Shown here: positions 49,408 through 50,000 of the stretch, in pieces
How positions within the stretch are numbered: position 1 is the stretch's first letter
Layout of the letters: each line of letters opens with the position of its first letter
DNA from: Monocercomonoides exilis PA203
Lineage: Eukaryota; Protista; Preaxostyla
Assembly: GCA_001643675.2 (NCBI GenBank)
Contig: LSRY02000019.1
Coordinates: forward strand, 248,001 to 312,000
DNA: 64,000 nt
Direction of reading: 5' to 3'
The notes under the pieces: model-generated
Told to the model about the DNA's origin: nothing
Seen by the model: the letters and a program-made list of their open reading frames with translations, nothing else
Database searches by the model: none
Translations under genes and position numbers: made by a program

Positions 49408-50000
49408 ATGGCAGCGAAGCCTGAGAGAAATTTAGCGGATGAAATTTTTTATTCTGAACGAGTGCACGATGACAAATATGAATACAGGTAATGCTTAATT
49501 TGAAGAAGATGAAAATTGATTTTACGAAATCTTTATTTTAATTAAATTTTCTTGCATATTTTTTTGCATAGGCACGTAATTCTTCCAAAAGAGCTTGCTG
49601 AAAAAGGTAATTGTTTTTTTTTTTTTTATTTCTCTATGATAAACTTTGCTCTAAAGTTCCAAAAGATCATTTTATGTCCGAAGAGGAATGGAGAAGATTA
49701 GGGATTTGTCAATCTGTTGGGTTTGCTTCGAATTTCTTGAAATTGTTTTTTGATAACTTTATTTATTGATAAATAGATGGGTTTGTTTCTTATCGTGAAA
49801 TTGTTTCGCAAATTCAGTGTTTAAAAATATATATTTCTTATTCGTTTCCAATTTGTCACGATGAACCTTTTCTGTAGGGTTTGACTTTTTTTTATTTTTT
49901 AATTATATATTTGACATTTTTTAAAGAACATTTTGACATGCATCCACCGGAGCCACATATAATTTTGTTTAGAAGACCGCTCCCAAATCCCAATAATTAA
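49408..50000 (+). CDS. CKS1: Cyclin-dependent kinase regulatory subunit CKS1/Suc1
   Basis: Exons 49408-49487, 49572-49606, 49657-49720, 49777-49780, 49878, 49927-50000 give IFYSERVHDDKYEYRHVILPK...[35 protein letters not shown]. Not in the ORF track. Confidence 0.93.

Follow-up and report, generated by a model that had tools for sequence, protein, structure and literature searches.

A proposed one-nucleotide exon beside a four-nucleotide exon in the CKS1 genes of Monocercomonoides exilis and other oxymonads

The CKS1 gene of the window and its transcript

The window, a 64,000-nucleotide stretch of the genome of the mitochondrion-lacking protist Monocercomonoides exilis PA203, contains on its plus strand a CKS1 (Cks/Suc1) gene of six exons, including a 4-nt exon and a proposed 1-nt exon, and this copy is one of three CKS1 paralogues in the M. 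exilis genome. As was found by an exon-by-exon comparison with the Pfam family PF01111, the translated gene matches profile positions 1–14, 28–46 and 51–68 with scores of 11.9, 24.5 and 23.0 bits, and a six-frame genome search with the same profile gave 32.6 bits at the exon 3 region, above the 27-bit cut-off. The product has the motif G-W-E-H, read from the mRNA contigs, and the motif H-x-P-E-P-H-I-L-L-F-R-R, read from the translation of the last exon; G-W-x-H takes the same place in CKS genes of other eukaryotes. The closest database proteins are the NCBI models named CKS1 of M. exilis. The start codon at 49408–49410 was assigned by its likeness to the paralogues, and the translation of exon 1 begins with M-A-A-K-P-E-R-N. 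The features of the gene are listed below in window coordinates.

49408–49487, plus strand: exon 1, 80 nt, with the start codon at 49408–49410, ending in phase 2; Pfam CKS positions 1–14; RNA contigs from 49414
49488–49571, plus strand: intron 1, 84 nt, GTAATG...AG; RNA joint 49487/49572, GT..AG, in 4 runs
49572–49606, plus strand: exon 2, 35 nt; translation and RNA contig coverage
49607–49656, plus strand: intron 2, 50 nt, GTAATT...AG; RNA joint 49606/49657, GT..AG
49657–49720, plus strand: exon 3, 64 nt, ending ...GTT GG (bases 1–2 of the Gly codon); Pfam CKS positions 28–46, E-value 3e-5; the RNA piece ends exactly at 49720
49721–49776, plus strand: intron 3, 56 nt, GTTTGC...TAG; read from the sequence and missing from the mRNA contigs
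49777–49780, plus strand: 4-nt exon ATGG (base 3 of the Gly codon and the Trp codon); TAG and GTTTG flanks, letters present in the mRNA contigs
49781–49877, plus strand: intron 4, 97 nt, GTTTGT...CTTTTCTGTAG; canonical ends and a pyrimidine-rich 3′ end, acceptor use presumed
49878, plus strand: proposed 1-nt exon G (base 1 of the Glu codon GAA); extra G in the mRNA, conserved AG/G/GTNTG
49879–49926, plus strand: intron 5, 48 nt, GTTTGA...TTTTTTAAAG; canonical ends, donor use presumed
49927–50200, plus strand: last exon, coding 49927–50000 with the stop codon TAA at 49998–50000; Pfam CKS positions 51–68, E-value 9e-5, and RNA

For evidence from RNA, the analysis drew on four metatranscriptome runs in which the locus was found, all belonging to one study and used as assembled contigs only, which drop rare forms; these were aligned to window positions 49300–50200. 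Each of the four runs yielded one spliced contig of 405–499 nt without mismatches to the genome. In all four, exon 3 (to 49720) is followed by ATGG, a single G and then AACATTTT..., so that the message encodes GGA TGG GAA CAT, that is G-W-E-H, in a frame open to TAA. Since these spliced contigs carry both ATGG and the G, this is an expressed gene, with the five bases as part of its message.

A preliminary description of the window, made from its letters, had set the GTTGG end of exon 3 at 49720, ATGG at 49777–49780, the G at 49878 and the AACAT start of the last exon at 49927, with introns of 56, 97 and 48 nt. All these coordinates and lengths proved right, and the three donors read GTTTGC, GTTTGT and GTTTGA. 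The description had further reckoned that exactly 5 nt are missing for G-W-x, which agrees with the gap of three residues between Pfam CKS positions 28–46 and 51–68, and it had predicted the mRNA GGA TGG GAA, which was found in the spliced contigs of the four runs with zero mismatches. A message lacking the extra G, set beforehand as the refuting outcome, was not what the contigs of these runs showed.

The 205-nt interval between exon 3 and the last exon contains ATGG once. The G at 49878 is flanked as ctgtag/G/gtttga, with a pyrimidine-rich stretch upstream, an AG acceptor and a GTNTG donor of the kind seen at the other strong donors of these genes. Another combination of this type, AG-T-GT at 49816–49820 within intron 4, was considered and rejected: splicing there would bring in a TAA stop, the donor would be GTTTAA instead of GTNTG, and the site is unused in the mRNA contigs. 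An Rfam scan for an RNA gene within the CKS1 introns gave only sub-threshold chance hits.

The 3′ UTR of CKS1 reaches at least 50161–50200, the RNA contigs being continuous to there and beyond. A convergent gene on the minus strand (within 50161–51247, with open frames at 50215–50670 and 50963–51247) lies tail to tail with CKS1, and its products are acidic and rich in Lys and Glu. Because the CKS1 RNA contigs of two runs extend past 50200, an overlap between the two genes at their 3′ ends is probable.

CKS genes of oxymonads and other eukaryotes

The six-frame PF01111 search covered the M. exilis assembly (82,301,135 bases in 101 contigs) and revealed two further CKS genes, on contigs C72 (L001:1338–1926) and C50 (L002:1343–1949). 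Both have the identical six-exon layout, in which exon 3 ends in GG/gt and is followed by ag/ATGG/gt, by ag/G/gtatg and by a last exon that begins with TT AAC... or AA CAT.... The coding sequences of the three paralogues are 68–81% identical. Protein searches for CKS added models of the two M. exilis paralogues, a model of Streblomastix strix and one JGI metagenome contig, and returned no gene of Blattamonas or Paratrimastix.

The S. strix gene (GCA_008636045.1, L008:2488–3093) reads cag/CTGG/gtatgg, cag/G/gtgtg and then AACATTTTGAT; within Oxymonadida, S. strix is placed in another family than M. exilis. In-frame TAA codons occur in this gene (L008:2488–2800) at the conserved positions D-K-TAA-Q-R and C-TAA-S-V-G. 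S. strix uses TAA for glutamine, and these codons fit such usage. Contig Ga0466728_081719 of JGI metagenome 3300042620 contains a CKS gene of an oxymonad-like organism (L009:345–788) that reads tag/ATGG/gtttg, aag/G/gtttg and then TTCATTTTGAT, and its protein is 81% identical to that of one M. exilis paralogue. It is without the introns at E-Y-R/H and K/V that are common to the other four genes and has an intron of its own after codon 17; the three introns of the micro-exon cluster are kept and are very short (35, 67 and 40 nt). The 4-nt exon is thus ATGG in four genes and CTGG in S. strix. A gene with a one-base exon other than G was looked for among the CKS genes, and all five have G.

In the other four genes, the counterparts of intron 4 measure 96, 106, 78 and 67 nt and those of intron 5 measure 55, 61, 70 and 40 nt, the pairs 96/55 and 106/61 belonging to the C72 and C50 paralogues, respectively. 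The two introns flanking the G are 40–106 nt long over the five genes, which is near the 35–86 nt of their other introns; counted as one, introns 4 and 5 would make up the longest intron in each gene.

A scan of metagenomes for more oxymonad CKS genes gave 13 loci, none of them from an oxymonad. No CKS reading was seen in one of these (L022, 68% GC). The remaining 12 are CKS loci of other eukaryotes and encode G-W-x-H without interruption, and for this reason the micro-exon intron cluster is specific to oxymonads among the genes seen here.

The public gene models were found to be wrong at the micro-exons in all three cases, two in M. exilis and one in S. strix. The model of the C50 paralogue (P0001) keeps reading into the intron after ATGG and finishes with ...GWVCLLFFE, that of the C72 paralogue (P0007) joins ATGG directly to the last exon without the G and acquires a frameshifted tail, and that of S. 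strix (P0002) omits G-W-E-H-F-D-R. Annotation pipelines thereby deprive a core cell-cycle protein of its invariant Trp and its C-terminal strand.

The join used in the P0007 model would be expected if the window gene were a decaying or non-productive copy, whose main, frameshifted product skips the G by joining ATGG to AACAT while the paralogues supply the function; minor isoforms could also be hidden by the contigs. In each of the four RNA runs, the one form that was assembled contains the G and stays in frame to the conserved C-terminal end. Moreover, each of the three M. exilis paralogues has a frame open to the stop only when both tiny exons, and hence the G, are included, and the genomic sequence of the window gene read without G 49878 meets an early stop. 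We give the idea of a non-productive copy hardly any credence.

The recurrence of the layout bears on the quality of the assembly as well. Nanopore assemblies are prone to homopolymer errors. A single G dropped from a run of G, the true sequence being ATGGG/GT or AG/GAACAT, would fit the RNA contigs equally, and the M. exilis assembly is nanopore-based (PMC8767320). Nanopolish and ten rounds of Pilon were used to polish it, remapped Illumina reads served to detect remaining errors (PMC8767320), and the exons are identical to the RNA contigs throughout. The same three-G runs, together with the internal AGGGT, are present at three separate M. exilis loci, and both are likewise present in the S. 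strix and JGI assemblies, which were made by others; an indel would also leave the conserved internal motif unexplained. With the layout repeated in two paralogues and two independently made assemblies, an assembly error is very unlikely, and the initial view that the G at 49878 is needed is upheld.

Placement of the extra G

The extra G of the message has three equivalent placements in the genome: 49878, as a 1-nt exon; 49781, as the end of a 5-nt exon followed by a TT donor; and 49926, with the acceptor one base early. The mature mRNA cannot choose between them, because a one-base shift of a GT or an AG also yields G. The preliminary description had taken both a 4-nt and a 1-nt exon to be included. 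Its five bases are present in the mRNA, and the use of 49877 and 49879 as splice sites is the part that the contigs leave without an intermediate. Partially spliced contigs number zero among the four runs, an uninformative absence given that contigs drop rare forms.

The extra G could accordingly come from a shifted, non-canonical boundary, either through a 5-nt exon ATGGG (49777–49781) followed by a TT...AG intron, or through a GT...AA intron that ends at 49925 and leaves G 49926 exonic. This alternative, which gives the same mRNA where the exon base is G, was absent from the preliminary description, and only comparative evidence opposes such a shift. It predicts an identical mature mRNA with one intron fewer, ATGGG is contiguous in the genome, and in the aligner's own output the last joint is a GT..AA one, running from 49720 through ATGG to 49926. 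With a shift, however, every one of the five genes would have to use a non-canonical dinucleotide, and this would differ between genes: a TT or TA donor, or else an acceptor that is CA in the metagenome contig and AA in the other four. Such boundaries contradict the report that M. exilis introns are ubiquitously GT-AG (PMC6759080). The one-base exon is favoured here, since it needs only canonical GT-AG sites.

The second line of comparative evidence is the intron sequence itself. When the intervals of the five genes are aligned (the three M. exilis paralogues, S. strix and the JGI metagenome contig), AGGGTNTG (AG-G-GTNTG) is the sole block within the introns that is invariant. It occurs twice over both strands of the 64-kb window. 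The chance of finding it in shuffled intervals is P = 0.0006–0.002 per gene and about 0.001 for the window gene; these values are not to be multiplied, since the five genes are related by descent and the product would overstate their independence. Of the 15 pairwise intron comparisons between the three paralogues, 12 give an identity no more than two standard deviations away from that of shuffled controls. The comparison indicates that the AG-G-GTNTG motif is under selection, because it survives while most of the surrounding intron sequence has been randomised. A shifted boundary fails to explain why AG-G-GTNTG with its pyrimidine-rich lead should be the only invariant block in such diverged introns.

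The donors point the same way. Those after the 4-nt and 1-nt exons are GTNTG in 10 of 10 cases over the five genes; several further donors in these genes depart from GTNTG (GTAATG, GTAATT, GTATTA, GTTAAT, GTATAC and GTATAA). GTNTG, the typical donor of this genome, is not found at every intron: the first two introns begin with GTAATG and GTAATT in the window gene (49488–49493 and 49607–49612) and with GTATTA and GTTAAT in the C50 paralogue (L002:1423–1428 and 1544–1549).

On this comparative ground we infer that the G used is the one at 49878 rather than 49781 or 49926. A single-G exon at 49878 is considered highly probable, with the mRNA sequence and the conservation as its basis, and a shifted boundary improbable.

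Stepwise splicing and related systems

If the one-base exon is used, the codons for the invariant Gly-Trp-x of G-W-x-H would be split by three short GT-AG introns of 56, 97 and 48 nt. Each of them would be recognised separately, by intron definition, through its GTNTG donor and pyrimidine-rich 3′ end. When U1 pairs with a donor, its footprint extends over the final three bases on the exon side. The AG at 49876–49877 and the GT at 49879–49880 are one base apart and, because of this footprint, would not be engaged together. Introns 4 and 5 would then be removed one after the other, since both sites cannot be engaged at once. With intron 4 removed first, the donor would be re-created at TGGG/GTTTGA, as in recursive splicing; with intron 5 removed first, the acceptor ctgtag/G would be kept. 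Either order would lead to GGA TGG GAA. The CKS1 locus may behave as a recursive splice site does; by definition G 49878 is not one, as one base stands between the AG and the GT and is retained in the mRNA.

Ratchet points, which are recursive sites of this stepwise kind, have a zero-length exon that leaves no base behind, and they lie in very long introns. At CKS1, in contrast, one base is retained, the introns are 48–97 nt long, and stepwise removal is presumed. The two are alike, as far as the part of the Drosophila work considered here goes, in having an acceptor followed by a donor inside an intron, a re-created 5′ splice site, stepwise removal and unstable intermediates (PMC6110457).

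The nearest precedent is the 1-nt exon A333 of APC11 in Arabidopsis thaliana, which was proven by base changes that reappeared in the cDNA (Guo and Liu 2015, PMC4674806); it had been invoked in the preliminary description and is real. Like the CKS1 case, it concerns a constitutive 1-nt exon with AG/GT flanks inside one annotated intron, in a gene for a small conserved cell-cycle protein, where the exon is required by the frame and the public model is wrong. In APC11 the base is A, so that no origin from a shifted GT or AG is possible, whereas in CKS1 it is G, supported by mRNA and conservation only. Unlike APC11, CKS1 has an additional 4-nt exon one intron upstream, and its layout is conserved between paralogues and in no fewer than two families of oxymonads. 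To our knowledge, no other one-base exon adjoins a 4-nt exon.

The accepted one-base exon of Fusarium CYP621A is counted by its authors as the second published example after APC11 (PMC12940212, 2026). It likewise has an AGGGT core with a single G, was derived from a phase mismatch, intron-alignment conservation and SRA reads across the joint, and had been given wrong public models. It carries the same ambiguity of the G as CKS1 and has the same kind of support, but it is a single micro-exon in a fungal P450 gene, while CKS1 is a protist cell-cycle gene with a pair of 4-nt and 1-nt exons.

The introns of placozoan mitochondrial cox1 are organellar and thus depend on another splicing machinery. 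The single-base-pair exon described there, in the portion of the report considered here, is likewise one base long but belongs to a mitochondrial gene (PMC5436844). The plant micro-exons of 1–15 nt (PMC8831610; MEPDB, PMC12409088) are comparable in being very small coding exons that are constitutive, lie in conserved motifs and regularly escape annotation pipelines; these sets, in the parts of the two sources considered here, consist of plant data. The literature search found no comparable micro-exon report for Metamonada and no paper mentioning the CKS1 one-base exon, and the M. exilis genome paper is silent on CKS and micro-exons (PMC6759080). The CKS1 G would be a further case of a very rare known kind, the first found in a protist.

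According to the gene comparison, the micro-exon layout of CKS1 has been kept through two gene duplications and in two or more families of oxymonads. The residue that the 4-nt exon encodes, Trp, is presumably part of the phosphate-binding pocket, which would explain strong selection against mis-splicing. It is possible, though rather doubtful, that one-base exons are a recurring, stably inherited element of oxymonad genes that is maintained by obligatory stepwise, recursive-like splicing; the three CKS1 paralogues each show one. If this is true, the pair of 4-nt and 1-nt exons would be older than the split between Polymastigidae and Streblomastigidae, and skipping of the G could act as an on/off switch that leads to a frameshifted, non-productive CKS1 mRNA.

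U1-associated proteins were reported to be nearly absent from the M. exilis spliceosome (PMC6679479). In this lineage, whose U1 particle is reduced, the CKS1 locus would be a naturally occurring test case for stepwise splicing and pure intron definition, and it suggests that an exon too short to hold an exonic signal of any kind can remain stable over long spans of evolution.
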